A DNA stretch of 64,000 bases from sequence record PP496438.1; one strand, given 5' to 3'. This document shows positions 11,092-52,739 of the stretch, piece by piece; positions within the stretch are counted from its first letter, which is position 1; every line of letters starts with the position of its first letter. The notes beneath the pieces were generated by a model. That model saw nothing but the letters and a program-made list of their open reading frames with translations. It did not search any database and was not told the origin of the DNA. A program made the translations under genes and the position numbers.

Positions 11092-11128
11092 AAAAAAAGC
11101 CCCGTCCAATACCGGCACGGGGCTTTTT
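11092..11128. terminator. bidirectional intrinsic terminator
   Basis: A7-GCCCCGT...ACGGGGC-T5 between convergent genes. Confidence 0.8.
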
Positions 11129-11152
11129 CACCTCACTACGTTACCGGATGCC

Positions 11153-11668: not shown

Positions 11669-11680
11669 GGTCAGCCCTCC

Positions 11681-26963: not shown

Positions 26964-27787
26964 TAGTCTGTCCTCTTGATATTACCGGGTAGGGTGTAGG
27001 ACCACGGCTTGACATAATCTGCCGGGCGGGTGTAGCCTATCAGGTCTTCACCTTCGTAGGGGCCGTGCTTCCACGGGTCAGTAATCTCTGCGCGTTCAAA
27101 CCCGATGGACTCGTATAGCTTGATCGCACCTTCGTTGTCCGGGTCCACGTTGAGATGGTGGGGCAAACCTTGGGTCAGTTCCCAAGACAGCAGGAATTCC
27201 AGCATGCCTGTGGCAACCCCGCGACGGCGGTAGTCTGGATCAACACTGATCTCCTTGACGAAGCACGCGTCCACCTTCTCGCTGTCTTCGTCTTCTTTGA
27301 ACATCACAACGTCCATCAGCCCAACGACCTTGTTGTGCGCGGTCACGGTCACCCGTATCTCCTCCTGATCCGGTATATCTCCGCTCCAGCCATTCCATCT
27401 GGCCATGGTCACGGTGTACAGATTGTGTTGCCCGTCGTGCTTGGGACTGTGCACCTGATGCAGTGCCCGTGCATTCTTCAACTCCATCTTGGCGCCGGGC
27501 TTGATGACCGGGAATTCCAGATGCTTGATTTCCTTTTCAAGCATGATACCAATCTCGGAGTCTTTCGCTTTCTTGTCTTTGATGGTGGCTCGGTACACTG
27601 TGTCTGTGTCCGTGTTGTAAACACCCACCTTATCCGTCATCACCGTAATAGACGGCACAGCGGACCAGATGTACTCTTTGCAATGAGCTTTATCCGGGAA
27701 TGCGAAGCCAACGGACTTGCCGTCTACAATGACCAGCCACGGGCAATGGCCGGGATGCGGAAACCGAAGGATCTTTTGTGTGGGCAT
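26963..27787 (-). CDS. GNAT acetyltransferase (RimI-like C-terminal domain)
   Basis: ISVDPDYRRRGVATGML (motif A) and NEGAIKLYESIGF (motif B). Confidence 0.85.
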   Translation of the reverse strand: MPTQKILRFPHPGHCPWLVIVDGKSVGFAFPDKAHCKEYIWSAVPSITVMTDKVGVYNTDTDTVYRATIKDKKAKDSEIGIMLEKEIKHLEFPVIKPGAKMELKNARALHQVHSPKHDGQHNLYTVTMARWNGWSGDIPDQEEIRVTVTAHNKVVGLMDVVMFKEDEDSEKVDACFVKEISVDPDYRRRGVATGMLEFLLSWELTQGLPHHLNVDPDNEGAIKLYESIGFERAEITDPWKHGPYEGEDLIGYTRPADYVKPWSYTLPGNIKRTD

Positions 27788-33917: not shown

Positions 33918-35396
33918 ATGAAATCTGTAGCCGTTGACTACCAAAAGATAGCCAAGGAATGCCAGTGTACCGAGCTGCCTTCTAAGGTAAGAGTTACGCG
34001 TGCACGGGTCTATCCAAACTTGAGGACGTGCCTACTCTTCCTCAAGTACGATGCCAAAGGCGATCTGGTGCAAGCCGAGATCACTGCGCCGTACGACACT
34101 TCCACCGAGCCAAAGGTGCGTGTGCTCAAGCACCCGGACAAGAAGTCCGACTTCCTTTCATTATATAGAGCGCTGATCCGCCATCAGATCATACCCGAGT
34201 CTATTCCGAAGAAAGGTAACGGGATTGCACCGACGCTGGAGGTAATCGGCACACTGGTGAGCCTGCTGCCGGAACGGGATGTCGAAACCTTCCGAACCCT
34301 GACCCCGGCCATCCAGACTGGCAGCGTCATGTACGTCCCTCTGGTTACGTCCCGGCCAATGCCCATGGTGCAACACTGGATACCCGTTGACCAGCATTCA
34401 GAGCTGGGCATGATCGAGCTGGTCGATACGGATAGCAAGCCTTTCCTTAATCAGTGGGTCAACAGGTTGAGCAACACCGCCACCGGTTATGTGATCTACA
34501 CCCCGGAAGGCTCACACGGTCAGGAACTCGCCTGCTTCCGTGTGCCCAATGTGCAAGGAGAGGAACTGTGCGTGGTCAAGAAGGTGGACTTCACCCTTAC
34601 CGTTGCTCGCACCCTCAAGCCGGTACTGACCGTCTCCACCAAGAGTACGCGTGCCGTATCCCGCATTCCCCTACCCCACTATCTGATGCTGCGCAATCAC
34701 CACATCAAGGTGGGCACGGTTATTTCCCTGCGGCGTAACGACCGAGGTGGGTTGGTGTACCATGAGACGGTGGCAGAGGAAGGGATGACACCTCTGCCAC
34801 TGTGCCCACATTGCCATAGTGGATCTGTGCTGCGAAGTAGTAGCAATGACGTGTACTGCAATAACGATTCATGCCGAGGCCTAGCCATCGTGCGACTTCG
34901 CTACATCTTGAACAACAAGCTGGACGTCAAGTACCTGAGTCAGAACAAGGTGACGGCGTTGGTCAACGACAAGCAGGACCTGTTCAGCTTGCTCAAGACA
35001 CCGACTCACCTATTGCGGCACAGAGCGGGCTTCGGTGCACGTACGGTGGATGCGCTGGAAGAGAAGCTGAACACTATCGCCGGTCTTCCACTGCACACGC
35101 TGGCCGAGATGTCCTGCGCTTTCTACAACGTGGGTGTGCCCCCGCTGGATGAGATGGTGTTCAAGAAGATCTTTTCCGTGATGTCGCTTGACCACCTGAA
35201 AGCACTGCCCTCCACCGGTAAGATGTACAGCCAGTTGCTCGACATCGAAGGTATCCGCAACAACCGCGCAGTGGCTTTCCTCGCTGGTTGGCCTGCATTT
35301 CAACAGTGGATGATAGATCTTAACGCTGCCCTACAGTCTCGTAGCGCAATCTCCTCCACGGTAAATAACCCGAAACAAATTCGAGGTGTTAAATGA
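33918..35396 (+). CDS. degenerate NAD-ligase-like protein (OB, zinc finger, HhH; no catalytic KxDG)
   Basis: ACFRVP...VKKVDFTLTVARTLKPVL...VSRIPL...IKVGTVISLRR, CPHC...YCNNDSC and GFGARTVDAL follow the LigA C-terminal order; GGAG RBS before ATG 33918. Confidence 0.7.
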   Translation: MKSVAVDYQKIAKECQCTELPSKVRVTRARVYPNLRTCLLFLKYDAKGDLVQAEITAPYDTSTEPKVRVLKHPDKKSDFLSLYRALIRHQIIPESIPKKGNGIAPTLEVIGTLVSLLPERDVETFRTLTPAIQTGSVMYVPLVTSRPMPMVQHWIPVDQHSELGMIELVDTDSKPFLNQWVNRLSNTATGYVIYTPEGSHGQELACFRVPNVQGEELCVVKKVDFTLTVARTLKPVLTVSTKSTRAVSRIPLPHYLMLRNHHIKVGTVISLRRNDRGGLVYHETVAEEGMTPLPLCPHCHSGSVLRSSSNDVYCNNDSCRGLAIVRLRYILNNKLDVKYLSQNKVTALVNDKQDLFSLLKTPTHLLRHRAGFGARTVDALEEKLNTIAGLPLHTLAEMSCAFYNVGVPPLDEMVFKKIFSVMSLDHLKALPSTGKMYSQLLDIEGIRNNRAVAFLAGWPAFQQWMIDLNAALQSRSAISSTVNNPKQIRGVK

Positions 35397-36157
35397 ACAA
35401 TCAAAACAGAACTCGTATCGCTGTGCTTGTCGGCGGCGGTCTGGACTCACATGCGTACATGGTGTTGAAAGCCGACCAGCCTCAGACAGACTTCATTCAT
35501 GTGGACTACGGCCAGCGGGTTGCAGTAGCCGAGAGAAACGCCGTGTTGCAAATGGCTGAGAAGCTGGGCATTGCCCGCAGCCGGGTGTACACGCTGATCT
35601 GCAACAAGAAGAATCACATGCGCAAGGTCAATGACGGTGTGGGTGTGTTGTTTGGCACCGGCCCGGTCGAGATGGACAATGCGTTTGTTAAGGGGCGTAA
35701 CCTGTTCCTGATTCAGAAGGCCATCGAGCTGGGCTACGGTCACGTGCACCTGACGCTGACCCAAGAGCGTGGCCGGATGTTCCCCGATGCCGATCTGGCA
35801 TTCGTCCAGCTGGTGGACAACCTGATGCACCGCAGTTATGACGTGAGGGTGTCCGCACCCTACATCATGGAAGACAAACACCGGGTGATGTTCAAGGCGT
35901 ATCGGCACTGTCCCGAGTTCATCGATATGTCTTTCACGTGCTGGGTAGGTCCTTATGTGGAATGCGGAACGTGCCCGCACTGCTACAAGAAGGAAAAGAT
36001 TCGAGCCGAGATGATCGTTGAGAAGATTGAATACGATCTCAGCAAGGATGAACGTGAGGCGCAGTGGGAGCAAGTCAAGGCAGGCTACGGCGACGCGTTG
36101 AAGCCCGCTGAGACCATCAACATGAACATTCAGGTTGTTGACGGGGAAATGAAATGA
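35393..36157 (+). CDS. queC: QueC-like PP-loop ATPase (paralog 1)
   Basis: GGGLDS, DYGQR, KGRNL, FPDA and SFTCW...CGTCPHC zinc motif. Confidence 0.85.
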   Translation: MNNQNRTRIAVLVGGGLDSHAYMVLKADQPQTDFIHVDYGQRVAVAERNAVLQMAEKLGIARSRVYTLICNKKNHMRKVNDGVGVLFGTGPVEMDNAFVKGRNLFLIQKAIELGYGHVHLTLTQERGRMFPDADLAFVQLVDNLMHRSYDVRVSAPYIMEDKHRVMFKAYRHCPEFIDMSFTCWVGPYVECGTCPHCYKKEKIRAEMIVEKIEYDLSKDEREAQWEQVKAGYGDALKPAETINMNIQVVDGEMK

Positions 36158-36915
36158 ACAAGTTCTTAGGTTGGTTCAAGCGTCTGCTGGGTAAGGAGCA
36201 AAAGGCGGTAACGATGACAATGACCGACGCCAGTGGCAAGTTGGTCACCATTCATATACCTAAAGGTGCTGGGGTTGAGTACACCTTGTCGAAGTCGGGT
36301 GCCCACTTGAACGTCTCGGTCAAGGACGACATCTTCGTATTGAGCACGAACGGTGCTGGAGGCGGTGGGGGTGGCCGCGGTAGATCCAAACCTGGTGGCC
36401 CCGTCCATCCGCCCGTGCATCCGCGCCAAACCGTCCCAGTGGGTCCAGGCGCCCCGAACATGGGTTGCGCTGGGGACGCACCGAGTGGAGCAGGTGTAAC
36501 GTCGCCAGTGGGCGCTCAAGCTTCGTTCCCTATCGGTGCCCGAGCCACTGTTTCTGGTGGTGGCCGCGTTGGTGGTCTGGCGGGTGACGGACGGGAACAC
36601 AGAGAACTCGGAGGTGCACCCGGTCCCGGCGGAGATAGCTTCGTGCCCTCTCCAATCCGTAGTAGTGACCGAGCCTATCGCATCCGCGGTCTGTACTACG
36701 TCATTACGACTCGAAAGCTTACAGGTGAGGAGTACCCGACCCACGAACTTCTGCACTGGGGCCTTCGAGACATAGAACTCATGGGCAAGTTCTCAACGGT
36801 CCGTGAAGCTATCGACGAACTCAAGAGTAAGCTGGGTATCGTGTTAGACGATATTACGGACTATCAGGTTGACTCCATTCCCAAACGAATGTGCAAACCA
36901 CCGCACAAATCTTGA
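36154..36915 (+). CDS. Gly/Pro-rich hypothetical protein
   Basis: 253 aa, ATGA-coupled to QueC-1; GGGGGGRGRS run and a G/P-rich middle. Confidence 0.65.
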   Translation: MNKFLGWFKRLLGKEQKAVTMTMTDASGKLVTIHIPKGAGVEYTLSKSGAHLNVSVKDDIFVLSTNGAGGGGGGRGRSKPGGPVHPPVHPRQTVPVGPGAPNMGCAGDAPSGAGVTSPVGAQASFPIGARATVSGGGRVGGLAGDGREHRELGGAPGPGGDSFVPSPIRSSDRAYRIRGLYYVITTRKLTGEEYPTHELLHWGLRDIELMGKFSTVREAIDELKSKLGIVLDDITDYQVDSIPKRMCKPPHKS

Positions 36916-36918
36916 GCG

Positions 36919-36926
36919 GGTAAATG
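36919..36926 (+). promoter_or_regulatory. candidate phage promoter GGTAAATG
   Basis: Intergenic, 28 nt before QueC-2. Confidence 0.5.
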
Positions 36927-36953
36927 GCTCGCAACTAATCCGGAGACACTAGC

Positions 36954-37772
36954 ATGACCACTACACCCCCTAAGATTATCGTCGCATTCAGCGCTGGCAC
37001 AGATTCAACCACAGCGGCCTATTACTATCGCAAGCTCGGGTATCAGGTTACGCTGGCTGTCTTCGATGATGGCCCCTGCAACGATCCAAAGGATCCTCTG
37101 TACGATCCTAACAAGCCGGAAGATCTTACCAATTTCTCCGACGAGTTCTACGATTACGTACGAATCCATCAAGAACACACTGAGGGTCACCTGCAGTTCG
37201 ACTTTGTGGAGATCCGTTACCCACAGCTCCCGTTGTTGGAAGCCAACAAGACGGCTAAACCTGGTCGGGACAACGCGGCGGCAGCCGAAGCTGACGGCTT
37301 GGGGTTCTGGGTAGGCTTCAAAGGCCTGATGGCGATGATGCTGATGAGCCACGGCGCGGCCAACGGTTACGAGGCTGTAGTCTTCGGCCACATGCCGTAC
37401 AACAACCATTACGAAGATGAGCTGCCGCAGAACTTCGAGCTGCTGCGCCAGTACATGGTTACGGCCTATGGTAGCCGGGTGACTATTCCTCAGGTCTATC
37501 ACCCGTTCTACCGACCCAACTTTGATACCAAAGAAAAGGTTATCCAGCTGGCGTTGAACATCGGTGTGCCACTGGGAGATACTTATTCGTGCCGCCGAGG
37601 TGAAGCGGAAACCCGAGGCGTCCTCCTGCCACTTCTGCGCGGCGGTAAATCCAACTACGTGATGCCCACCTACCGCTGGAAGCATTGCGGAACGTGTGAG
37701 AACTGTGTAGAACGCAAGCGAGCTTTCGCCGCGCTGGGCATGAAAGACCCAGCCCCTTATATGGAACATTGA
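36954..37772 (+). CDS. QueC-like PP-loop ATPase (paralog 2)
   Basis: AFSAGTDS, TKEKVIQLALNIGVPLGDTYSC and CGTCENCVERKRAF. Confidence 0.85.
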   Translation: MTTTPPKIIVAFSAGTDSTTAAYYYRKLGYQVTLAVFDDGPCNDPKDPLYDPNKPEDLTNFSDEFYDYVRIHQEHTEGHLQFDFVEIRYPQLPLLEANKTAKPGRDNAAAAEADGLGFWVGFKGLMAMMLMSHGAANGYEAVVFGHMPYNNHYEDELPQNFELLRQYMVTAYGSRVTIPQVYHPFYRPNFDTKEKVIQLALNIGVPLGDTYSCRRGEAETRGVLLPLLRGGKSNYVMPTYRWKHCGTCENCVERKRAFAALGMKDPAPYMEH

Positions 37773-37773
37773 T

Positions 37774-38763
37774 ATGGCCCTTTCAATCTGGCCGCTGACC
37801 GAAGGTGAACTCGGTCAGGGCCTCGTCAACGAACTGAATCGTACCAGCAAGGCGCTGGTGAACCGGAGTATGTGGTCTTTGCCATTGCTCCGGCGTTTGT
37901 TTTATCGGCGCACCGAGATTGGTGTCCCGGAGCTACTCCACGTCTGTACCAGCATTCATCGGGGCAAGACTTACTTCTGCCTGTTGGTGAACTTCCGAGA
38001 CGTGGTGATGGGCAATCCCGACCAGTATGGCTGGGATCTGGCGGGCCGCTGGTTGTTCTACGACGTTGATCTGCTGGACACCCCGCCGTTCAAAGCGGTG
38101 AAGAAGTCCGTTGAGTCCCGTGCTACCAAGACCGAAGTGTCGTACGGTCAGGCTTTCCTCCCTTACGAGAAGAGCGATGAGGAATACGTCAAGTCCCTCA
38201 AGGGCAACTACAAGCCCCACATCTTCGGCGAGAAGTCCAAGCAGTATCGCATCTCATCGTACTTCGGACTGGCAGCGGTAGCCCCCTTCGCTCAAGCTCT
38301 GATGTGCTTCGGCATTCAGCGCGCCGAAAGGTTTATGGCCGAAGGGCAGAACGATGTCCTCCCCGAATTGTACGACCTGCCACTGCAACTGGCTGGTCTT
38401 GGTAACATCTCGAACACCCGCATCGGCTGTGTGACCATTGAAGTAGAAGGTACGATGGTAGGTGCTATCAGCATGTATGCTCAAGGTGCACTTGGTGATG
38501 CTGACATGCTGTATCTGCATGAAATCCTCATCGACCCGGACCCCAAGTGGAAGAGCTTGTCACTGGCTACTCTGCTGCACATTCATGCCGTCCTGTACTA
38601 TCGCCGATCCCTCCAGAAAGACGTAGTGTTCAATCTGGGCTACAACTTCGCCGACGGATATCAAGGTTACAAGGATGTCTTCCGGCCCAACGCCAATAGC
38701 TTCAACGTGTACACCGAGATGGACACCGAGCCCGGCGTACCACTGTCCTGTTTCAAGGGGTAA
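37774..38763 (+). CDS. GNAT/Fem-like (Acetyltransf_6-type) acyl/aminoacyl transferase
   Basis: LPYEKSDEEYVKSL...VEGTMVGAI...SLATLL...FNLG...GYKDVF pattern. Confidence 0.6.
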   Translation: MALSIWPLTEGELGQGLVNELNRTSKALVNRSMWSLPLLRRLFYRRTEIGVPELLHVCTSIHRGKTYFCLLVNFRDVVMGNPDQYGWDLAGRWLFYDVDLLDTPPFKAVKKSVESRATKTEVSYGQAFLPYEKSDEEYVKSLKGNYKPHIFGEKSKQYRISSYFGLAAVAPFAQALMCFGIQRAERFMAEGQNDVLPELYDLPLQLAGLGNISNTRIGCVTIEVEGTMVGAISMYAQGALGDADMLYLHEILIDPDPKWKSLSLATLLHIHAVLYYRRSLQKDVVFNLGYNFADGYQGYKDVFRPNANSFNVYTEMDTEPGVPLSCFKG

Positions 38764-38766
38764 GAC

Positions 38767-39768
38767 ATGTACACTCCGTATTCCCAAAACAGCCTTATGC
38801 AGTCGATCCCTCTGGATGACCAAGGTACATTCGCCCATCCACCGTACACGATGGAAGGAGAGTTCACCGACGTGTGGACGAATCCCAGCCTGTACGGGTT
38901 TGTTAGCTTGTTGAACGGTCAGAGCAATAGCCGGGCATATCGAGACTGGATGACCACCCACAATCTTCCAGCCCTGTTCCTCGGTCCGCACCATGAAGAC
39001 AACTTCTGGTTTGAATTCAGCACTGGTCTCGATTCCAACTGCACGCTGGATTACAACGAGATCAACGTCCAAGGCAACCTGCAGGACTTCCTTGGGAGAT
39101 TGACGTCATCTCGCCGTCGCTCCGTGCTCAAGGCAAAGGAAACGGATACAATGATCCACAAGGCAGGCTCGGTAGCCAACTTCAACCTGTATCATCCGGT
39201 AGAGGGTAGGCTGTATAGTCTGACCGTGATTCACGAACGCCGGGTGATGAAAGATATTTCCGAGTTTATCGAATCGAAACTCTGGAGTATGAAGCATACG
39301 CCTACTGACCTCACGTACGGTGCATTCACCACTCTGATGGACTACATCCGGTTGAAGCAGCGAGATGACACGCCGCTGGGCCACCGGTTGCGCAACGTAC
39401 AGCTCTTGGTTATCCGAGATGAACGCTCCGGGTTTATCGTGTCGGTACACCTGGTGGCGATCACCACGTTGAAAGATGAGTCCATGAACCCCATCAAGAC
39501 GTACATGCACTCCTTCGCACGCATCACTGTTCTCCCTGCACGCATCGCCTTACTTGCGTTGATCAAGGCGGTTCAAGAGTTAAACGTCACCAGTCAGTAT
39601 GCGTCCCGTGCACTGGCGAAGATCGACTATCTTGATGTGAGCAACGTGGTGCTGTCCGAGCGAGAGCAGTACAAGTCGGACTTCTTCACCGGCAAATGCC
39701 AAGTGCGTGCGTGGGCATCCCCGGCGCTGCTGGAACGGCAGTTACCTTTCGTCACGCCGATCCCGTAA
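38767..39768 (+). CDS. GNAT/Fem-like transferase
   Basis: QDFLGRLTSSRRRSVLKA and C-terminal YLDV...QYKSDF. Confidence 0.55.
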   Translation: MYTPYSQNSLMQSIPLDDQGTFAHPPYTMEGEFTDVWTNPSLYGFVSLLNGQSNSRAYRDWMTTHNLPALFLGPHHEDNFWFEFSTGLDSNCTLDYNEINVQGNLQDFLGRLTSSRRRSVLKAKETDTMIHKAGSVANFNLYHPVEGRLYSLTVIHERRVMKDISEFIESKLWSMKHTPTDLTYGAFTTLMDYIRLKQRDDTPLGHRLRNVQLLVIRDERSGFIVSVHLVAITTLKDESMNPIKTYMHSFARITVLPARIALLALIKAVQELNVTSQYASRALAKIDYLDVSNVVLSEREQYKSDFFTGKCQVRAWASPALLERQLPFVTPIP

Positions 39769-39771
39769 CTC

Positions 39772-39784
39772 TGTAAATGATGGG
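39772..39784 (+). promoter_or_regulatory. candidate phage promoter TGTAAATGATGGG
   Basis: Intergenic; 12-nt identity to the 8824-8835 site. Confidence 0.55.
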
Positions 39785-39822
39785 AACAGCCCCACCATCA
39801 CTTCATCTCTAGGGTAGTTCCC

Positions 39823-40875
39823 ATGCAAGACTTCGATAAGATAATGATCGATAGTAGTTTGACATCCAATCTGGTGTACGCAGGGTTGGGTAACTTGATC
39901 ACGCCCCGCGCACTTGACCTGCTGATCGAACATCAGGCTGCACTGGAAAACGTATACGCCAATCTGGAAACGGCCTATCAGATTACCCCACCCTTCCCCT
40001 GTGAAGCTGCATTCAATTCCCCTGACAAAGATCCTGTGCTGGTCGCCGACTATCTGAATGCTACTCCCGCCATCCGTTGCGGAGAGCTGTCTGGATTCGA
40101 GGCAAAGCCCGGCAGTTACTACCATGCGCCCGCCGCTGGTATCTCCCCGGAACATCGCATTGACGTACGTGGTATGTCTTTGCGTGAGTTCGACCACTAT
40201 CTGGTTGAGCGTAAGGAAGTATCCCGTATCACTACCAATCTGGTGGCCGACAAGTTCCGCTGTGAGACGCATGTGTACAAAGTGGATGAAGATCATATCC
40301 TGATCCATGACGCCGAACGAGTTGGGATCAGCCAGACGGACTTCCGCCGCATGTGGGCGCAGACCCGCCGCCGGGAAATCGCTGAAAACTATCTGCAGTA
40401 CATGCCCATCGAAGATTCCGCCAAGGATGATCAGGTGGTGCGACTGATCAACGAAGACGTAGCACGGGTGTTCGCCCAGAACGTCGACTACGACCGCATG
40501 ATTCCGCCCGAGCTGATCTTCGATGGTCAGGGCAAGCCGGTGCTGACCGTGCTGAAAGATTGCAACGCCAAGGTATTGGGCATTGGTGTGTACGTCATCT
40601 ACAAGTCAGCTGACCCAGAGCATGACAGCGAACTGCACTGGCGTGGCGCTTTCTACGATCACGAAGATCCTCGCGTAGCATCCATGGGCATTGAACACGC
40701 TCTGGTTGCCAGCGCACTGCACACAGCGTACGCCTGCAACGCGGTCCTCTATCTGACCAAGGCACCTAAGTCCGTGTGCGACGCATGGAAGACGGAAGTG
40801 CACCAAGGTTACGGTCTGGTCCGTAATGCGATGCCGGAACTGTCTGACACCCCTTACATTCTGGCTATCCAGTAA
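39823..40875 (+). CDS. GNAT-fold protein, ATE/Bpt-like aminoacyl transferase candidate
   Basis: C-terminal KVLGIGVY...GAFYD...SMGIEHAL resembles the FYDP...SLG motif of Arg/Leu-tRNA protein transferases. Confidence 0.45.
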   Translation: MQDFDKIMIDSSLTSNLVYAGLGNLITPRALDLLIEHQAALENVYANLETAYQITPPFPCEAAFNSPDKDPVLVADYLNATPAIRCGELSGFEAKPGSYYHAPAAGISPEHRIDVRGMSLREFDHYLVERKEVSRITTNLVADKFRCETHVYKVDEDHILIHDAERVGISQTDFRRMWAQTRRREIAENYLQYMPIEDSAKDDQVVRLINEDVARVFAQNVDYDRMIPPELIFDGQGKPVLTVLKDCNAKVLGIGVYVIYKSADPEHDSELHWRGAFYDHEDPRVASMGIEHALVASALHTAYACNAVLYLTKAPKSVCDAWKTEVHQGYGLVRNAMPELSDTPYILAIQ

Positions 40876-40908
40876 ATAGCCGGTAACTCCATCCATTGAG
40901 GTACTTCC

Positions 40909-42993
40909 ATGAAATCCGTGAACCCCATCTTCAAACACGTTCCCCAGTTCGACTGGCCTGTCATTCCCCGTGCGCAGTGGGAAGAGATCATCAAGGGAAA
41001 AGAGCATGTGATGTTCGACTCCTTCTCGCAGCTCGCTCAGGTGCTGGCTATCCCGGTGAGCAGTTACCAGTTCTACTTCGAAGATGGGTCCACGTTGTTC
41101 GCCGGTCCCGAAGCAACCTTCACCGCCGCCCCCTATCCGTTGTATCAGGATCTGGAATTCGTCCTGACCCCGGATGAGACGTTGGTGCCGGGTCTTGCAC
41201 TGGATACCAAACCGTGGGGCCTGTACACCGACGAATGGGTGGACAACTACGAAGGTGCGGACAAGGAAGACATCGGCAACAAGACCGGGTTCGAATTCAT
41301 TCCGCTGTCGGACGCTTTGAAACTGGTGGTCCTCAACACGGAGACCATGCAGCTCCAGTACACTGCAATCGAGAGCTTCACGTACGACGGCGTGACTTAC
41401 GTATACCTGCTGGCCGATGGCGTGTGCTGGGTACTGGCGGGCAAGTCCGGTGGTCTGGTTGCCAGCGAGCATGACAAAGGCGCGGCGTTCATCATGGTGT
41501 CCCATCCCGAGTTCGCCGGGTGCAGCGTAGACAACATGTACCCAAGTGAGTTCGGTGAAGCGGAAGCGACGTTCTACGTTCAAGACGAGGAACACAATTA
41601 CCTGGACGCGGCTAACCGCATCTTCGAGGAAGCCAAGGACGTAGGCGCTGGCACGTTCCTGACCATTGAGACCGGTGATGGATTGCCGACCGCGCTGGCG
41701 TACAACCTGCGGTACAGTGATGTGGCCCACGTTAATCTGCCGATGCACAACATCCACCAGTTCACTTCTCTTCACGTACGACTGGGTGAGACGCCTAACT
41801 TCTCCGAGGCCCCGGAAGCGTGCCGCATGAAAGAGGTGATGGAGTATCTGGCGGACCCTGAGTCCCCGGTAGATCATTACTGGTCGGCCATCATGGTACT
41901 GGAGAAGAACTTCCCCGGTTTCGCCGACGCCCTGAAAGACTCCAGTGTCCCGACCCGTGACATCGTGCACTCCAAACAGGCGTTCAGCTTGGAGATCGAT
42001 CGCCAGTTCGGCAAGGAAGTGGCAAGCAAGATCGGGCTGAACACTGGCGTATTCGCTCAAGTGAAAGACCGTGATGAATGGCTGGTACGCAAACACGAGT
42101 TCCCTACCGATAAGGTGGCCGTCAAGTACAACACCAAACACTTCATCGGCATCTTCGACAAGGACGAGGTATCGAAGTCCATCAACATGTGGCTGGCTGG
42201 TCAACCCGGAGAGTCGCTGATGATCGAAGAGTACTTCGGTGAGGGCAATCAGGAATTCAACCTGTGCTACGTGATCAACGAAGATTTCGTGCAGCCGACG
42301 CTGTTCCTGTGCGAAGTCAACAAGATCCTCAGCAATGACACCGGCGGCAAAGGTGGCAACACGCTGGCCTGCCATGATGCTCGTATTAACAAGTACCCTG
42401 AGTTCTTCGAGCCGGTCAATAATGCGCTTGCTAACCTGCATGAGCACGTGGAAGGTGTGAAGGGCTGGGTTGACCTGAGCTTCATGGTTCGCGACGGTAT
42501 CCCATACTTCACAGAGTGGTGCATTCGCATCGGCTGCTCCAACAACGCCACCATCGTGCGCCAGATGGAGACCCCGCTCGACGTCCTGTTGACTAACGTG
42601 GTCAACAAGGTGCATACCGAGCTGTCTTGGAAACACTCCATGTCTGTCAGCGTGGACATCTACAGCATGCCGCTATCCGCAGGCAACGACGCCAACATGC
42701 AGTTCACCGACTCGCTGACCACTCCGGTAGAGATGGTGTCCCCGCTCAATCTGGAACTGGCGGCGGAGAGTTTCTTCGACCCGATTGATTCGGCCTGGAA
42801 CGCGGTGTACGACGGCTACATCGTCGAGGCGTATAATCGCTATGGCACCGTCTCGGGGTACTCCACCAACTGGAACTTCGCCTGCAATGCGGCGTATAAT
42901 CACTTGAAAGATCAGTCGGTGTTGTACGGAGCGTACCGCGAAGCGCCTGCCCACCATGACCCACTGACTCTGTTCCCTTTCCTCAAGGCGTAA
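40909..42993 (+). CDS. PurD (GAR synthetase)-like ATP-grasp ligase with ~270-aa N-terminal extension
   Basis: SKQAFSLEIDRQFGKE, VAVK, MIEEYF, NDTGGKGGN, GWVDLSFM and FTEWCIRIG follow the PurD motif order. Confidence 0.75.
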   Translation: MKSVNPIFKHVPQFDWPVIPRAQWEEIIKGKEHVMFDSFSQLAQVLAIPVSSYQFYFEDGSTLFAGPEATFTAAPYPLYQDLEFVLTPDETLVPGLALDTKPWGLYTDEWVDNYEGADKEDIGNKTGFEFIPLSDALKLVVLNTETMQLQYTAIESFTYDGVTYVYLLADGVCWVLAGKSGGLVASEHDKGAAFIMVSHPEFAGCSVDNMYPSEFGEAEATFYVQDEEHNYLDAANRIFEEAKDVGAGTFLTIETGDGLPTALAYNLRYSDVAHVNLPMHNIHQFTSLHVRLGETPNFSEAPEACRMKEVMEYLADPESPVDHYWSAIMVLEKNFPGFADALKDSSVPTRDIVHSKQAFSLEIDRQFGKEVASKIGLNTGVFAQVKDRDEWLVRKHEFPTDKVAVKYNTKHFIGIFDKDEVSKSINMWLAGQPGESLMIEEYFGEGNQEFNLCYVINEDFVQPTLFLCEVNKILSNDTGGKGGNTLACHDARINKYPEFFEPVNNALANLHEHVEGVKGWVDLSFMVRDGIPYFTEWCIRIGCSNNATIVRQMETPLDVLLTNVVNKVHTELSWKHSMSVSVDIYSMPLSAGNDANMQFTDSLTTPVEMVSPLNLELAAESFFDPIDSAWNAVYDGYIVEAYNRYGTVSGYSTNWNFACNAAYNHLKDQSVLYGAYREAPAHHDPLTLFPFLKA

Positions 42994-42996
42994 TCC

Positions 42997-44157
42997 ATGA
43001 GCACTCCATTCCAAGAGTTCACCCTAGAGGGGTGGATTCAACATATGAATCAGGATCAAATCTGGAAGCGGTACGCCAACGATCATCCTAACAGGGTTGA
43101 GTTCAGCCCTGTTTGGCGTGACGAGATGTATCGGTTGATGGTACAGTTCAAAGAGCTGCTGCCGATGTCGTTCTCCAATCCGGTGTACGGCTTCACCGAA
43201 GGCTATCTGGAAGGGTTCGGACTCCAGCCTTTCTACGGCGATGATCCTTTCAATCCGATGGTTCAGCCTCTTAGCCATCCTCTGGTTCACGTGGGCTTCC
43301 CACTCACACTGGACGAGATCGTAGCGAGCGTGCGGGACTGGCAGTCCCTGAGCGATCACCTGGGGCGTCCGCAACTGGTCGATACATTCGAGCCGGTTTC
43401 ACTGCTAGCGCGCAACCTGTACGAGCCTAACGCGCTGCTGGCCGTACGGAACAAGGAAGAGATCGTGATGAACGGGGGCACGCCCGCGAACTACTTCCTC
43501 TGGCTGAATAGCCCGGTCACCGAACTCAAAGACGACTTCGACGTTTATCTGGCCAGCCTGACCAAGAAGCGCCGCTACAAAGTGAAGCAGGCGTTGGCGA
43601 CGGTAGGCACCGAAGAGAATCCCCGGATCAGCGTCAGCACCGGGTCTCGTTTCGGCGAAGGGCTGTTGTCCGATCAGGTGGACAGCATCCTTGCTACGTT
43701 CGAAGATCCAGTGGACATCGAGTGCATGCTTCTTCAGTTGCTATTCGGGGTTGCAACCTGCAATACCCATCCGCATCTTGTCGATCTGGTGTGTGCAGAC
43801 CAGCAGTTGGGGATCTTCATCAAGCGTAACGGCCACACGATGAACTTCCTCTACAACCGCGACCCGGACAACCGCGCTGATTCAGGCATAAACCTGCTTA
43901 CCCAGTACGTGCGCCATCTGCACATGAACCGACCGGAAGGTGTTATGTACGTGGACCCGACATGCCGATATCGGCCTGACGAGGACAGTATGAACACCTA
44001 CAAGCGGGTGATCACCAACGAGAACCGGTATCACCCAATGCCGTTCGTCTCGGCTGACCCTGCGCACATCGAAGGTGTGCTTACCCCGGCGTTCATTGCA
44101 GGCCATTGGCAGATGTCGGCGTCCAACGGACCGGCCAACCCCGAGATGATGGAGTAA
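42997..44157 (+). CDS. GNAT/Fem-like transferase
   Basis: FDVYLASLTKKRRYKVKQA, GINLL and TYKRV. Confidence 0.65.
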   Translation: MSTPFQEFTLEGWIQHMNQDQIWKRYANDHPNRVEFSPVWRDEMYRLMVQFKELLPMSFSNPVYGFTEGYLEGFGLQPFYGDDPFNPMVQPLSHPLVHVGFPLTLDEIVASVRDWQSLSDHLGRPQLVDTFEPVSLLARNLYEPNALLAVRNKEEIVMNGGTPANYFLWLNSPVTELKDDFDVYLASLTKKRRYKVKQALATVGTEENPRISVSTGSRFGEGLLSDQVDSILATFEDPVDIECMLLQLLFGVATCNTHPHLVDLVCADQQLGIFIKRNGHTMNFLYNRDPDNRADSGINLLTQYVRHLHMNRPEGVMYVDPTCRYRPDEDSMNTYKRVITNENRYHPMPFVSADPAHIEGVLTPAFIAGHWQMSASNGPANPEMME

Positions 44158-44159
44158 CC

Positions 44160-45107
44160 ATGGCAAAGTCCAAAATGAGACGGTTGGCGATCAACCACAT
44201 CTATGACTTCTACCCGTTGTATCAGGTGATGTACGGGCGTGGCATGGAGACCAAAGCGTTCGAGGTATCCAAGTTCGCCAAGATGGTTATGGACTTCGAA
44301 GCCTCGACCAGTACTCGCCGGAAGTGGGACGTGCTGGAGCCCTTCAGCGGTATCAGTGAACACGAACACTTCTTCGCTGCGACCGGCCTGAACATCGAGC
44401 ACTACACCGGCATGGACATTGTGGTTCCAGATGGGGCCACGAACGTCATTCAAGGGGACATCATCACCGACACCCTTCCGTTTCACGTCAACGCAGTGTT
44501 CGCCTTCTACTACAGCTTGCAGAATGTACGGGACGCGGCGACCGGCATGCACACGCGGGCCAAGCTGGTGGAGTTCTTCGACAACATCATTGGTCATCTG
44601 CAAGTAAATGCGAACAAGAGCCGTATGCCCGCAGTGTTCGCGTTCCACCTTGACCAGCCTGAAGATCCTAATTACTATCTGACGTCCCGTGCCGACGTTG
44701 GAGGTGAACAGTCATGGACTGCACCCGCGTGTGGTCTGCTCGGGCAGTGGGTCAAGTGCAAGCCGACTGACACTCTGGAAGTCAAGTGCAATCTGGATAC
44801 CTGGTACAACCGCGTGCAGTGCACAGCGTATGATCAGGCAGAGGACATTCAGATTCTGGTAAATGGGAAAGTAACCGCTGTCGTAGACATCGAGCAGCCG
44901 TTCACCCATCGGGTCTGGACCGAGCATGAGGTCATCGATATCCTGCGGGGTCTGGACTACAATCTGCACTTCCACATGTACAACGGCACCCTCTCCAATT
45001 ACGACTTCTTGATGACCCGGCTGGACGACAAGCCCGTTCCCGGCGATGAAGAGTCTAATACTAATCAGATGACAACTGATATGTTGGTTGTCGTTAATCC
45101 GAGGTAA
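44160..45107 (+). CDS. class I SAM-dependent methyltransferase
   Basis: VLEPFSG (motif I variant), GMDI, IQGDI, NAVFAFYYSL; GGAG RBS before ATG 44160. Confidence 0.6.
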   Translation: MAKSKMRRLAINHIYDFYPLYQVMYGRGMETKAFEVSKFAKMVMDFEASTSTRRKWDVLEPFSGISEHEHFFAATGLNIEHYTGMDIVVPDGATNVIQGDIITDTLPFHVNAVFAFYYSLQNVRDAATGMHTRAKLVEFFDNIIGHLQVNANKSRMPAVFAFHLDQPEDPNYYLTSRADVGGEQSWTAPACGLLGQWVKCKPTDTLEVKCNLDTWYNRVQCTAYDQAEDIQILVNGKVTAVVDIEQPFTHRVWTEHEVIDILRGLDYNLHFHMYNGTLSNYDFLMTRLDDKPVPGDEESNTNQMTTDMLVVVNPR

Positions 45108-45109
45108 GC

Positions 45110-46027
45110 ATGGCTAAGCCCAAGGTTCCAACCAAGACGATCCCCACGTTGTACCAAGACTGGGGATTGTACAGCGCCATCTGCGAACTGCCGCAGGAGA
45201 CGATGCTGATGATGTCGCGCTTCGTGGCAGACCGAACCATTGAGCACGCTGAGCGTATCGATCAGGTAATGGTCGAGATCATGGAACCCTTCAGCGGCCC
45301 AATCCCGTATTACGAGCCAGACATCCGCAGCTTCCTGACCCGCGCTAAGCTTGATCTGTACACGTACGATCACGTCGAATACCTGGATCACGGCAAACTG
45401 TCGGAAGACAACGGCATCATCATCGGTGACATTACCACCATCGATCTGAAGCAGAAGTACGACGTCATCTACGGCAGTTACGGCAGCTTGGCCTGCCTGC
45501 TGCTGGATCAGACGCACAACAAAGCGTACGAAAAGTCGCACGCGGCGCTGGTCAACATCCGCAACCACCTGAAACCCAACGGCATCTTCATCCTGAACGC
45601 CAACGGGTCCAGTGAGAGCCTACTGAACAACCTGCTGAACTCCGATGAGCCGGATCAGGAGATTCGCGTTCGTCCGGGATCGCAGCTTGGCAAGAAGTTC
45701 GGCATCAAGCCGGACAGCAACGCGCTGCTTCGCTTCACCTATCACGTGGAGTACGACCGACGCACCACCTGCACCATGTGCCACTACAGCGATATGGTGC
45801 TGTCTGTAAATGGGGTTGACATCCAGCGCTGGGAGGTGGAATCCCCGACGTATCTTGCTCCGCTGGACGAACCCGAACTAATTCGAATGGCAGGTATGGC
45901 TGGTTTCAATCTGGACAACACTGAGTTCTACGGATTGGACACCACCGGTTATCCTGCCTTCTTCAAAATGGATACGGTCTGCGACGGGTCATGGTCACCC
46001 GCCGAGTTCGTAGTCTTTCGCACCTAA
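45110..46027 (+). CDS. class I SAM-dependent methyltransferase
   Basis: MEPFSG, IGDI, YDVIYGSYGSL and HLKPNGIFIL. Confidence 0.8.
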   Translation: MAKPKVPTKTIPTLYQDWGLYSAICELPQETMLMMSRFVADRTIEHAERIDQVMVEIMEPFSGPIPYYEPDIRSFLTRAKLDLYTYDHVEYLDHGKLSEDNGIIIGDITTIDLKQKYDVIYGSYGSLACLLLDQTHNKAYEKSHAALVNIRNHLKPNGIFILNANGSSESLLNNLLNSDEPDQEIRVRPGSQLGKKFGIKPDSNALLRFTYHVEYDRRTTCTMCHYSDMVLSVNGVDIQRWEVESPTYLAPLDEPELIRMAGMAGFNLDNTEFYGLDTTGYPAFFKMDTVCDGSWSPAEFVVFRT

Positions 46028-46037
46028 CGAGGTTCCT

Positions 46038-47273
46038 ATGAGCGTTATCATCCCCACCGTAGCGATGGAGAGTGGTCAGCCAGACATGATCATTCAAGGC
46101 TGTTCCACTGGTCGCGTCTCTATGGCCGAGCCTAACGAGAGCGCCAAACCCAAGTCTTCCAAGAAGCTGTACGAACGTGAAGACCTGATGGCGTACGACA
46201 GCGAGTCGGAGCACTGGCAGAAGCAGTTGGCCCGCCGCTACGCTCACCATGGTGAGATGGTCGGTGTGTTGAACAACGTCGAGGTGGTGCCGGAAGCCAC
46301 CTACCAGAACTTCGACATGAAGATCACTCCGTACACCGCGCAGTTGATGGATCAGAACGACCCCAACTGCCCGATTCGTCTGCAGTACATGCCGACCAAC
46401 AAAGAGCTGGAGTCGATTCAGCGTGAAGAGACCATGCACAACGAGCTGGGCGAGGAAGAGGACACCGTCCCCGGTACCTCGGTCGTGCACCGCTACCCGC
46501 GCCGCGTCTTGTTCCTGACCACCACCCAGTGCGCTAGCTTCTGCCGTTACTGCACCCGTGCACGCATCGTCTCTCACGGCGGTGAAGCGGCTATCACCAA
46601 GAAGCACCTGGACGCCAGCATCGACTACATCGCCTCGAACAAGGACATAGAAGACGTGTTGCTGTCCGGCGGTGACCCGTTCATCCTGCCAGACAACAAG
46701 CTCGACGAGATCCTCGGTCGTATCCGCGCCGAAGCACCTCACGTTCGCTTCCTGCGTATTGGTAGCCGACTGCCGGTACAGATGCCGACTCGTATCACTC
46801 CAGAGCTGTGCGAGATTCTGGAACGCCACAACGTCAACATGGTCAACATCCATGTGAACCACCCGAAAGAGGTCACCCCACTGCTGGCCTCCCGGATGAA
46901 GATGTTGCGCAAAGCTGGCGTGATGATCGGTAATCAGGCGGTCCTCCTGAAAGGCGTGAACGACTCCATCGAGGTGATGACCGAGCTGTGCTTGCGCATG
47001 GTCGAGATGGGTGTGCGTCCGTACTACGTCTACTCCAACGATCCGGTTGCGCAGGCCGCACACTTCACCGTCTCGCTCCGTGATATGCTGGACATCAACG
47101 AAGGCATGCGTGGCTTCCTGTCCGGCCCGGCAATGCCCACCTTCGTGGTGGACGGCGTGGGTGGCTTGGGCAAGATGCCCGTGCAGAAAGAGTATGTGAC
47201 AGTACTGGGGAGTGGTAAGATCTGGGCCACCAACTTCGAAGGAATGACCACTCGCATGCCCCATCTGGAGTAA
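46038..47273 (+). CDS. kamA: lysine 2,3-aminomutase (KamA/EpmB family radical SAM)
   Basis: HRYPRRVL, CASFCRYC (CxxxCxxC), SGGDPF, HVNHPKE, NQAVLLKGVND, PYY and GGLGKMP (PLP lysine). Confidence 0.93.
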   Translation: MSVIIPTVAMESGQPDMIIQGCSTGRVSMAEPNESAKPKSSKKLYEREDLMAYDSESEHWQKQLARRYAHHGEMVGVLNNVEVVPEATYQNFDMKITPYTAQLMDQNDPNCPIRLQYMPTNKELESIQREETMHNELGEEEDTVPGTSVVHRYPRRVLFLTTTQCASFCRYCTRARIVSHGGEAAITKKHLDASIDYIASNKDIEDVLLSGGDPFILPDNKLDEILGRIRAEAPHVRFLRIGSRLPVQMPTRITPELCEILERHNVNMVNIHVNHPKEVTPLLASRMKMLRKAGVMIGNQAVLLKGVNDSIEVMTELCLRMVEMGVRPYYVYSNDPVAQAAHFTVSLRDMLDINEGMRGFLSGPAMPTFVVDGVGGLGKMPVQKEYVTVLGSGKIWATNFEGMTTRMPHLE

Positions 47274-47423: not shown

Positions 47424-47855
47424 ATGAGCTTCTCCGTAACCGTAGCTGCACAGACCATCGCTGCCCCCGAGTCGCTGGGTAGCCCGAAAGGCATCAGCGT
47501 CCTCGAAGCCAACGAAGGCTTTGCTGTCATCGAATTCCAACGTCCTCGCGCCTCGAAGCGTGACCAGATCGCCGTCCCTCGCGTCCAGATCCTTTCCCTG
47601 AGCCACGGCAGCGCCGACGGCGACAGCGGTTACCTGATCGCTCAAGGCATGGCCGGTGTGGCCGACGAATTCGAAGCCGCAAGCTTCACCATCGAAGGCA
47701 ACGTTGCCACTTTCGTGACCGCTGAAGGCGCCACCATCGAAACCGACGCACGTCTGACCCGTATCCTCGCTTACGGCGTGGAAGAGGGAGAAAACAGCCT
47801 GCTGGGTAAGCCGGAAAAGAAAGTAAAACCGAAAGCAAGCACCAAGAAGAAGTAA
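47424..47855 (+). CDS. abundant hypothetical protein with Lys-rich tail
   Basis: Strong codon bias, GAGG RBS, own terminator. Confidence 0.75.
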   Translation: MSFSVTVAAQTIAAPESLGSPKGISVLEANEGFAVIEFQRPRASKRDQIAVPRVQILSLSHGSADGDSGYLIAQGMAGVADEFEAASFTIEGNVATFVTAEGATIETDARLTRILAYGVEEGENSLLGKPEKKVKPKASTKKK

Positions 47856-47935: not shown

Positions 47936-48256
47936 ATGGCTAAAGACAGATTCCTGATCTACTCCAAAAACTGCTTAGGGTGTAAACACCTCGTTGATGG
48001 AGCCAAGAAGACCTACACTGCGTGTCACTACAGTGAAGGCAACGAACGCTGCCCCGCGCAGTACGTCCAGATTATTACGGGTGTGGATATCCATGCCTTG
48101 GCTACTGAGTTGGCAGACGCCATCAGGGCTAACAATTCCAAGAAGTACGATCGGGTGAATGCCAAGATCGGTAAATTGGACACTGTGATTGCCAGTAGTG
48201 TGAAGCTGGCCGCAGATAACCTAATAGTAGGGGCCGGTGATGGCGAAGGTAAATAG
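47936..48256 (+). CDS. hypothetical Cys-containing protein
   Basis: 106 aa; CLGCKH, CHY and RCP; GAGG RBS. Confidence 0.65.
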   Translation: MAKDRFLIYSKNCLGCKHLVDGAKKTYTACHYSEGNERCPAQYVQIITGVDIHALATELADAIRANNSKKYDRVNAKIGKLDTVIASSVKLAADNLIVGAGDGEGK

Positions 48257-52046: not shown

Positions 52047-52739
52047 ATGGCGAGCACGCTGGGCATTAAAGAAGCACAAGACATACTGGGGCTGGAACCG
52101 GGCGCTGACCTTGCCGATGTCAAAAAGGCCGTACGCAAGCTGTGCCAGAAGTTCCACCCGGACAAGGAAGGCGGTGACCCTGAGATGTTCCGGCGTGTGC
52201 GGGAAGCCGGGGAAATGCTGGAGGAAATTCTGGCGGATCACGACATCATCCCGAACGAGGAATATCTGGACGCGCTCAACTACGTCATCACCATGCTCGG
52301 CCAGAAGTACGTGGAGGCTGAGATGAACGGGATGAACGCCCGACGCCGGGTCGCGATCAAGATGACCAACGACGTTTTCAGCTTCCACAATCTGCAGCAA
52401 GCGGCATTCGCAGCGGCAGCACCGCCTAGCGCAGAGTCCTACGTGCTGAACGAACTTGAACAGGAGATCAACGTCAACATCGATGAGTTCAAGTCATCTA
52501 TCGACCGTCACTCCGTTCAAGGTAAAGGGCTGCGCATGTTGATGCAGAACATGAAGGCGCCGAAGATGGCCTACTCCGTGTGGCAAGACGCTCGGGATTC
52601 CTTGGCGCAGGCTATTCGCCAGCAACGCAACAACATCCGCATGGCTAAGATACGGATGCAAGCACTGGAAGAGTTCGAAGCCATCCAGCACAAGCGCAAG
52701 CAGGAAGCCATTCGTCTGGCCCATGGGGTGCGCTCATGA
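52047..52739 (+). CDS. J-domain (DnaJ-like) protein
   Basis: ILGLEPGA...KKAVRKLCQKFHPDKEGG with the HPD motif; helical C-terminus. Confidence 0.85.
   Translation: MASTLGIKEAQDILGLEPGADLADVKKAVRKLCQKFHPDKEGGDPEMFRRVREAGEMLEEILADHDIIPNEEYLDALNYVITMLGQKYVEAEMNGMNARRRVAIKMTNDVFSFHNLQQAAFAAAAPPSAESYVLNELEQEINVNIDEFKSSIDRHSVQGKGLRMLMQNMKAPKMAYSVWQDARDSLAQAIRQQRNNIRMAKIRMQALEEFEAIQHKRKQEAIRLAHGVRS

Follow-up and report, generated by a model that had tools for sequence, protein, structure and literature searches.

In the 64-kb window that we analysed (bases 124001–188000 of PP496438.1, the 202,022-bp genome of Pseudomonas phage vB_PpuM-SKa-4), a block of 12 genes, SKa4_00188–00199, hereafter g188–g199, lies within the replication module. 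We lean towards reading this block as a tailoring module of a phage 7-deazaguanine DNA-modification system. SKa-4, one of nine isolates, is a myovirus of P. putida KT2440/PaW85, a safe laboratory host, and belongs to the ‘G3 jumbo’ cluster of the Estonian CEPEST collection. Coordinates of block genes are window positions, and those of genes outside the window are positions in the PP496438.1 record. The 12 open reading frames (ORFs), all on the plus strand, fill positions 33918–47273:

33918–35396, plus strand: g188, 492 amino acids (aa), LigA-like protein with an OB fold, a C4 zinc finger and a helix-hairpin-helix (HhH) region, without Ia or BRCT domain
35393–36157, plus strand: g189, 254 aa, QueC-family PP-loop ATPase of type A (Pfam QueC, 5.6e-19)
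36154–36915, plus strand: g190, 253 aa, Gly/Pro-rich low-complexity ORF between the two QueC genes
36954–37772, plus strand: g191, 272 aa, QueC-family PP-loop ATPase of type B (Pfam QueC, 5.5e-12)
37774–38763, plus strand: g192, 329 aa, occupying the slot of a conserved family, X, in other lineages
38767–39768, plus strand: g193, 333 aa, possibly Fem-like, with a basic helix motif, L..L..(K/R)RR..(L/V)K, in common with the g196 family
39823–40875, plus strand: g194, 350 aa, neighbour of the gene starting at 38767, its sole relative being a metagenomic orthologue, M2 (29% identity)
40909–42993, plus strand: g195, 694 aa, PurD-like ATP-grasp ligase (approximately residues 354–585) preceded by an N-terminal domain of about 350 aa
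42997–44157, plus strand: g196, 386 aa, predicted Fem-type tandem-GNAT protein (AlphaFold2 and Foldseek)
44160–45107, plus strand: g197, 315 aa, predicted class-I S-adenosylmethionine (SAM)-dependent methyltransferase fold (AlphaFold2 and Foldseek)
45110–46027, plus strand: g198, 305 aa, paralogue of g197 (hhalign)
46038–47273, plus strand: g199, 411 aa, KamA-family radical-SAM/pyridoxal phosphate (PLP) 2,3-aminomutase (Pfam Radical_SAM and LAM_C)

The genes are separated, in order, by −4, −4, 38, 1, 3, 54, 33, 3, 2, 2 and 10 bp, and 99% of the interval is coding. The block sits between a divergent UvrD-like helicase gene upstream and topoisomerase II genes downstream; scans for promoters and terminators gave signal at chance level. 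All 12 genes are intact in eight other P. putida G3 phages, at nucleotide identities of 88–99%. In Peetri, the most distant G3 phage, the block proteins are 68–93% identical to those of SKa-4, and synonymous codon changes outnumber non-synonymous ones in every block gene except g192. Because the complete block is intact across the G3 phages and synonymous changes dominate in 11 of its 12 genes, it is real and under selection. Together, its packing, its conservation in the G3 phages and its synteny in other lineages, described below, go far beyond chance.

The pair g189 and g191 provides the link to 7-deazaguanine chemistry. Both are QueC-family proteins by Pfam, and both keep the PP-loop and the Cys4 zinc site of the family (GGGLDS and C..CGTCPHC in g189, SAGTDS and SC..CGTCENC in g191). 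Against TIGR00364, the profile of canonical QueC, they score 62 and 23 bits, respectively, with a cut-off of 150. In motif alignments, g189 retains YGQ, GRN and FPD without the His and Cys of the canonical YxQxHxxE and YPDC, and in g191 the canonical YxQxHxxE, VPxRN and YPDC are all replaced. An alignment of the QueC proteins of the different module versions separates the same two types: type A, made up of g189, V52 and further g189 orthologues, retains YxQ, xRN and aromatic-P/S-D, and type B, comprising g191 and its orthologues, replaces all three. Orthologues of g189 (L012_QueC210, 32% identity, and L013_QueC235) and of g191 (L013_QueC237 and L012_QueC207) both occur on L012, a 167-kb NCBI contig, and L013, a Logan contig. 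In Escherichia coli QueC, the YxQ, RN and aromatic-PD residues line the pocket for 7-carboxy-7-deazaguanine (CDG), and mutagenesis shows that they are needed for CDG turnover (PMC13329287). By its motifs, g189 is thus a candidate CDG adenylating or amidating enzyme. Since their substrate motifs are incomplete and their TIGR00364 scores lie below the cut-off, g189 and g191 are to be taken as QueC family members and not, demonstrably, as preQ0 synthases.

The remaining genes of a 7-deazaguanine pathway are found elsewhere in the SKa-4 genome (record positions):

17747–18949, plus strand: QueD-like protein, 400 aa, with a long acidic insert (PTPS 2.8e-8, phrog_2389 7.3e-8, CxxxHGH motif)
81638–83008, minus strand: SKa4_00105, DpdA/TGT-family transglycosylase (Pfam TGT, 32.9 bits versus a gathering cut-off of 26.3)
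193833–194804, plus strand: QueE-like radical-SAM enzyme (phrog_2076, 1e-41)
196770–197492, plus strand: FolE (Pfam, 1.7e-37)

Neither SKa4_00105, deposited as ‘hypothetical’, nor the QueD-like gene carries such an annotation in the GenBank record. SKa4_00105 aligns with the archaeosine tRNA-guanine transglycosylase 1iq8 across DSGxFQ, which reads DSGGFQ in the phage protein, and across the CxCPxC..H zinc site. Its orthologues in the Vibrio phages GR7B and GR11A are ‘TGT domain-containing’ proteins at 51–52% identity, and phages of Xanthomonas, Erwinia, Achromobacter and Burkholderia with genomes of about 220–230 kb carry more distant copies, as does the uncultured phage NCTB (258 kb). The orthologue of the Achromobacter phage Motura is part of a contiguous QueC, AsnB-like, TGT, QueE and FolE operon. 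A DpdA-family protein is regarded as the signature of 7-deazaguanine in viral DNA (Cui 2023, 10.1101/2023.04.13.536721). Phage 7-deazaguanine systems consist of DpdA together with FolE, QueD, QueE and QueC, with or without Gat, ArcS, QueF, DpdL, DpdM and DpdN, and SKa-4 holds the corresponding DpdA/TGT-family gene along with FolE, QueD-like, QueE and QueC-family genes. As g189 and g191 are the only QueC homologues found in the genome and the genes for CDG lie elsewhere in it, the block would be an extension of a 7-deazaguanine system. Two other candidates for these roles were rejected: a 407-aa gene between QueE and FolE is clamp-like (phrog_947) and not DpdA, and a 129-aa neighbour considered as QueD is without the conserved HxH or CxxxHGH.

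At the downstream end of the block, g199 scores 275 bits against TIGR00238 (cut-off 199) and 320 bits against AblA (cut-off 525), and is 51% identical to a Vibrio phage ‘lysine 2,3-aminomutase’. Aligned with the Clostridium lysine 2,3-aminomutase 2A5H (4.7e-80), it keeps the equivalents of C125, C129 and C132, K337, R134, D293 and D330; we take the three cysteines to hold the cluster, K337 to bind PLP, and R134, D293 and D330 to bind the carboxylate and ε-ammonium of lysine. With the latter three residues kept, the substrate is most likely lysine, or at any rate a basic amino acid; with an AblA score below the cut-off, it may be a basic amino acid other than lysine. The product is probably β-lysine or another basic β-amino acid.

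The ATP-grasp part of g195 matches TIGR00877 (purD, 1.8e-7 over residues 354–585) and GARS_A (0.031), and the only PDB match to its profile is PurD (2xcl, E 0.0025). Short orthologues in L012 and L013 carry Pfam GARS_A, jackhmmer unites all of these with L016_459, and the Vibrio phage orthologue GR11A_00049 is 37% identical. Its scores lie far below the PurD equivalog cut-off, and so g195 is not PurD itself. Scans of IMG/VR viral and JGI metagenome contigs with g195 or its alignment gave no relatives.

By sequence, g196 has no match in Pfam, PHROG, NCBIfam or the PDB. A full HMMER scan of 1.84 billion representatives gave 37 relatives; 2 of 36 match Acetyltransf_6 and 2 of 36 match FemAB_like. 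An AlphaFold2 model built on the alignment of these 37 relatives reached a predicted local distance difference test (pLDDT) of 87 and a predicted template modelling score (pTM) of 0.88. Searched with Foldseek against the PDB, it is nearest to the tRNA-dependent peptide synthases Sbb17 and Sba18 (3.6e-7), followed by FemX (2.3e-6) and by A-PGS, L-PGS and MprF (1e-5 to 1e-3), in each case with a Foldseek probability of 1.00 and with TM-scores of 0.35–0.50. On the basis of this model, g196 is a probable aminoacyl-tRNA-dependent aminoacyl transferase. Apart from the QueC proteins, no other member of the module is as widely conserved.

The fold predicted for g197 was modelled with four orthologues and paralogues in the alignment (pLDDT 74, pTM 0.73). 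The nearest structure is CypM (5.4e-9), followed by CalS10, TylM1, KedS8 and CcbJ, and the best 50 of the 76 PDB matches at E≤1e-3 are all methyltransferases. The model is closest to N-methyltransferases that act on primary amines. Orthologues of g197 occur in L010, L012 and L013. The neighbouring g198 aligns with it in hhalign at 79% probability over 251 columns, with the LEPFSG, GDI and YxSL motifs in common, has weak sub-threshold Pfam matches to Methyltransf_31 (0.034) and Methyltransf_12, and has an orthologue fragment in L010 (42% identity). We assign it by paralogy as a probable second methyltransferase.

The block opens with g188, which matches the DNA ligase 8ak4 at residues 226–351 (E 0.013) and TIGR00575 at 1.3e-6; its orthologue V55 matches DNA_ligase_OB (6.5e-8) and HHH_5. 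Aligned with the phage's own full-length NAD-dependent ligase, SKa4_00145 (record 122855–124834, window 1–834, minus strand), in which KLDG is present, neither g188 nor its two Vibrio-phage orthologues, V55 and lig440, conserve motifs I (KxDG), IV and V. A working ligase is rejected on these grounds: with the KxDG adenylation lysine not conserved, motifs IV and V absent and the OB, zinc and HhH elements present, g188 reads as derived from LigA without being a ligase. Given the genuine LigA in the same genome, it would be a second, non-catalytic copy, and its retained domains make a DNA-binding subunit probable. In the Pseudomonas lineage as in the Vibrio lineage, the block begins with a LigA-like gene.

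Between these genes lie four that are less easily placed. g192 evolves faster than any other block gene (68% identity with its Peetri counterpart) and has no match in Pfam, PHROG, NCBIfam, hhalign or a jackhmmer search of the collected set. g193 aligns to the g196-family profile with an hhalign probability of 33% over residues 99–127, a motif-level match only; its metagenomic orthologue M1 matches the g196-family hidden Markov model at E 0.0041 (800-sequence database), and an orthologue in L005 is 37% identical. g194 has no family or PDB match. In the collected set, jackhmmer joined g192–g194 to nothing, and hhalign among g192, g193, g194, g196, the X family, V54 and the methyltransferase family found no paralogy beyond g197–g198 and the motif-level g193–g196 match. 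Sequence-profile searches of the PDB with g196, g193, g194, g197/g198 and the wider g197 family returned noise only. The ORF between the two QueC genes, g190, has no family match and is restricted to P. putida G3 phages, being absent from the Vibrio and metagenomic versions of the module. It is intact in Peetri and evolves fast, with 82% amino-acid identity and 49 synonymous versus 45 non-synonymous codon changes. It may serve as a carrier or substrate protein, or may have been inserted recently.

An initial annotation of this DNA had described 12 tightly packed co-directional genes, ten of them enzymes, and the packing is borne out by gaps of −4 to 54 bp. Of the ten enzyme calls, seven hold: the two QueC proteins by Pfam, the PurD-like ATP-grasp ligase by TIGR00877, 2xcl and GARS_A in its orthologues, the lysine aminomutase by its family and its retained lysine-binding residues, the two methyltransferases by predicted fold (g197) and by paralogy (g198), and one of four GNAT/Fem proteins, g196, by predicted fold. 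As to the other three GNAT/Fem calls, g193 is left with its weak motif-level match, and g192 and g194 found no match by any method. The view that the first gene encodes a dead ligase, with predicted DNA binding, is supported by the lack of a conserved KxDG in all three homologues. Conservation in related phages, which the annotation had proposed as a check, was found both in the eight G3 relatives and in the core that is syntenic in GR7B and GR11A. Its statement that the gene set differs from the dpdA/7-deazaguanine pathway proved wrong at the scale of the genome, where FolE, QueD-like, QueE and DpdA/TGT genes lie outside the window.

Versions of the module in other lineages tie it repeatedly to deazaguanine. 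In GR11A and GR7B, the module is flanked by the same helicase and topoisomerase genes as in SKa-4 and runs in the order small ORF, LigA-like gene, DUF5591/ArcS-type gene, canonical QueC, divergent QueC, X, g196 orthologue, g195 orthologue, KamA and small GNAT. There the canonical QueC matches at 4.7e-59, the DUF5591/ArcS-type protein at 3.3e-7 with a PCxxxKPY motif, and KamA is 51% identical to g199; the arrangement of QueE, a clamp-like gene and FolE is also common to SKa-4 and these phages. L012 and L013 each carry two QueC genes, X, a Fem-type gene, a short GARS_A ATP-grasp gene and a g197-type methyltransferase gene. Of two short Logan contigs, one repeats g193-g194-g195-g196 and the other g195-g196-g197-g198. 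In L015, a Fem-type gene directly adjoins a KamA-type gene. On L016, a wood-metagenome scaffold (ENA ERZ28655555), an ATP-grasp and Fem pair lies at 6070–12440 between FolE and QueF/QueC; the aminomethyl group of preQ1 might serve as the acceptor amine in this lineage. One or more QueC-family enzymes, a Fem-type transferase and a PurD-like ATP-grasp ligase make up the recurrent core. Family X usually accompanies it, as does a g197-type methyltransferase or, in its place, an ArcS-type protein, with KamA, the LigA-like protein, g190 and g192–g194 as lineage-specific additions. Every long contig with the module is phage-like. The tie to deazaguanine lies in the canonical QueC and ArcS-type protein of the Vibrio version and in the FolE or QueF genes that adjoin others.

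Several further genes near the block or in its relatives may be recorded here. The small genes g200 and g201 (47424–47855 and 47936–48256, plus strand) separate the block from topoisomerase II and have orthologues at the equivalent position in GR11A (35–37% identity). Downstream of the topoisomerase II genes lies a gene for a DnaJ-domain protein (52047–52739, plus strand; Pfam DnaJ 1.9e-10). On L016, two neighbouring proteins of 403 and 344 aa match no family. A classical GNAT acetyltransferase (26963–27787, minus strand; Acetyltransf_1 5.3e-14) lies 6 kb upstream of the block and shows no detectable similarity to the small GNAT that other lineages have within the module. The nearby GNAT SKa4_00175 was considered as an orthologue of that small GNAT and rejected. 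Elsewhere in the genome, a thymidylate-synthase homologue (record 25970–27124) is unusually long at 384 aa, with a Pfam match spanning residues 33–377 versus a 266-position model.

Taken together, these data make a functional place of the block in deazaguanine metabolism very probable. We name DNA as the final acceptor with less assurance, while still favouring it. DNA had been named in the initial annotation among several possible acceptors and is now the best supported of them, given the DpdA/TGT-family gene and the FolE, QueD-like and QueE genes in the genome; the chemical logic set out there (β-lysine supply, carboxylate activation, tRNA-type aminoacyl transfer and methylation) stands for those genes that were verified. 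In the scheme that we propose, FolE, QueD and QueE would supply CDG, and one or both QueC-type enzymes would adenylate its C7 carboxylate and couple it to a non-ammonia amine, a reaction with precedents in Cap9 and QatC, which use protein N termini; the likeliest amine for this step would be β-lysine from g199. In the Vibrio version, canonical QueC and the ArcS-type protein might instead yield an amidine-linked lysine, as archaeal ArcS does on tRNA. The ATP-grasp ligase g195 would form a further amide from an amino-acid carboxylate, g196 and perhaps g192–g194 would transfer aminoacyl residues from aminoacyl-tRNA to free amines, and g197 and g198 would N-methylate terminal amines. DpdA would exchange guanine in DNA for the base, before or after tailoring, with g188 holding the DNA during any steps on it. 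The outcome would be a bulky, cationic guanine replacement that shields the phage DNA from host nucleases. This particular side-chain chemistry is tentative and may well be wrong in its details, and we are equally cautious about the product that it implies, a 7-deazaguanine carrying a β-lysine-containing, N-methylated aminoacyl or peptidyl chain added in part by aminoacyl-tRNA-dependent Fem-type transferases. The paper on the CEPEST collection reports that G3 jumbo phage DNA bound standard kit columns very poorly, with extremely low yield, and that columns were switched (10.1101/2024.03.26.586772); unusual DNA chemistry might account for this, as might other causes.

Several observations weigh against a tailoring module for DNA. 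Modification of virion DNA is predicted from gene content, and FolE, QueE, QueD and DpdA are scattered 35–140 kb from the block, so the connection between the block and deazaguanine rests on co-occurrence in the genome and on the assignment of g189 and g191 to the QueC family. Both copies lie far below the canonical cut-off, g191 is without the canonical substrate motifs, and the two might activate some different carboxylate. Phages with an orthologous DpdA (Xanthomonas, Erwinia, Motura) gave no match to g195 or g199, and g192–g194 and the N-terminal half of g195 are uncharacterised. Fem-type transferases are not known to use DNA or a nucleobase as acceptor, a tRNA-dependent step would be hard to fit sterically onto duplex DNA, and tailoring before insertion would require DpdA to accept a bulky base. 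Finally, in type IV CBASS, the cyclic oligonucleotide-based anti-phage signalling system, proteins are the joint targets of QueC-like and TGT-like partners (10.1101/2025.04.06.647259), and this makes protein deazaguanylation the most serious rival.

Under that rival, the QueC-like enzymes would attach CDG to the N terminus or a lysine of a phage or host protein, such as g190 or a virion protein, and the rest of the block would build or cap the adduct. QueC-family enzymes are proven ATP-dependent protein–nucleobase ligases, and the TGT-like Cap10 binds the modified protein (PMC13329287). The SKa-4 TGT-family protein, however, falls in a clade whose members are found in classical deazaguanine operons of phages, the first gene of the block encodes a predicted DNA-binding LigA-like protein, and the NCBIfam QatC match is just 0.04 over 30 residues. 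The odd, disordered g190 is encoded between the two QueC genes, but this only obvious substrate candidate is absent from all other module lineages. The nearest match of g197, CypM, is a peptide N-terminal methyltransferase, and the amines used by FemX, MprF and Ate1-type enzymes are those of peptides or lipids; the block and its flanks showed no CD-NTase, QatA, QatB or QatD partner. On balance we judge modification of a protein improbable. A free metabolite, an acceptor unrelated to deazaguanine and tRNA modification are each less well supported. The block and the CDG genes might make a diffusible 7-deazapurine or β-lysine peptidyl compound that, for example, poisons competitors or reprograms the host. 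The best structural neighbours of g196, Sbb17 and Sba18, bound to streptothrisamine, come from streptothricin-type antibiotic pathways, those of g197 are natural-product N-methyltransferases, and KamA with an ATP-grasp enzyme is a common natural-product combination. No transporter, phosphoribosyltransferase or glycosyltransferase was seen in the block, however, the module stands in a replication region beside a DNA-binding protein and on long contigs that are all phage-like, and the DpdA encoded in the genome has no role in such a route, which we regard as quite unlikely.

We hold it no likelier that the QueC-like enzymes activate a different carboxylate and that the block modifies a capsid protein or another base, such as a derivative of thymidine or cytidine. 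The two QueC copies have diverged, the genome encodes the long thymidylate-synthase homologue (384 aa), a nucleoside triphosphate pyrophosphohydrolase and a deoxynucleoside monophosphate phosphatase, and a KamA-like radical-SAM isomerase takes part in thymidine hypermodification in phage M6. Yet no 5-hydroxymethyldeoxyuridine (5-hmdU) kinase or aGPT-Pplase was detected, and the Vibrio module includes canonical QueC and an ArcS-type domain, with FolE or QueF adjoining other versions. The least probable reading, to which we give very little weight, is that translation is tuned through a hypermodified base, similar to queuosine or archaeosine, which the TGT-family enzyme would place in phage or host tRNA together with the products of the block. 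TGT, QueC and ArcS are ancestrally tRNA enzymes and Fem-type enzymes bind tRNA, but the 64-kb window has no tRNA genes, and in phages studied so far such gene sets modify DNA. Although the archaeosine tRNA-guanine transglycosylase is the solved protein nearest in sequence to the phage TGT, the distance of SKa4_00105 from tRNA TGTs is as large as that of phage DpdAs (33 bits, Pfam TGT).

A tailoring module for 7-deazaguanine in DNA would share features with several known systems and match none of them. Similar to described phage 7-deazaguanine systems (PMC6884629; 10.1101/2023.04.13.536721), SKa-4 has FolE, QueD-like, QueE, QueC-family and DpdA/TGT genes among its replication genes, and the Vibrio relatives add canonical QueC and an ArcS-type DUF5591 protein. 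Unlike in those systems, QueC is present in SKa-4 as two divergent copies, and the pathway genes lie apart as opposed to forming one operon; moreover, the eight described derivatives need no aminomutase, ATP-grasp enzyme, Fem-type transferase or class-I N-methyltransferase. DpdM is reported to have a different, unique fold (Cui 2023, 10.1101/2023.04.13.536721). As with Cap9 of type IV CBASS and QatC of QatABCD, in which a QueC scaffold joins the CDG carboxylate to a non-ammonia amine, g189 or g191 is proposed to carry out such a step; Cap9 and QatC differ in serving host defence by acting on the N terminus of a partner protein, and such partners were not seen around the SKa-4 block.

In the archaeal archaeosine pathway, ArcS adds lysine to preQ0 in tRNA and the radical-SAM enzyme RaSEA then cleaves the adduct. 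This is a precedent for a lysine–7-deazaguanine conjugate, and the Vibrio module pairs a DUF5591/ArcS-type protein (PCxxxKPY) with a lysine-type aminomutase; there, however, the substrate is tRNA and the lysine adduct is transient, whereas here the radical-SAM partner is a KamA-type aminomutase and SKa-4 is without an ArcS-type gene. Streptothricin and BD-12-type pathways, which also use β-lysine and N-methylation, contain the tRNA-dependent amide-forming enzymes Sbb17 and Sba18 that are structurally nearest to g196, but they belong to Streptomyces secondary metabolism with an amino-sugar acceptor, and g196 is only 13–14% identical to these enzymes, with TM-scores of 0.36–0.49. In phage thymidine hypermodification, amino-acid-derived, positively charged side chains are likewise built stepwise on a phage DNA base, with a different base and different activation chemistry; its signature 5-hmdU kinase and aGPT-Pplase were not detected in SKa-4. 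In full-text literature searches on the phages by name and on 7-deazaguanine together with aminomutase, ATP-grasp, lysine or FemX, no description of the module was found, and neither the CEPEST phage-collection paper nor a recent survey of the QueC family mentions such a cluster or neighbourhood.

SKa-4 and its relatives thus most likely encode a 7-deazaguanine system with an unprecedented amino-acid-adding tailoring module and, with it, a new kind of phage DNA hypermodification. Eight 7-deazaguanine derivatives have been described in viral DNA, all with small side chains. If the reading is correct, the module would open a new branch of DNA hypermodification that proceeds through QueC-type, ATP-grasp and tRNA-dependent addition of amino acids, and, if the more tentative product proposed above is right as well, would represent both the first nucleobase–peptide hypermodification of DNA and the first use of charged tRNA in modifying DNA. 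It would assign new roles to the duplicated QueC paralogues and to a Fem-type family represented 37 times among 1.84 billion proteins, and may provide new enzymes for the site-specific functionalisation of DNA.

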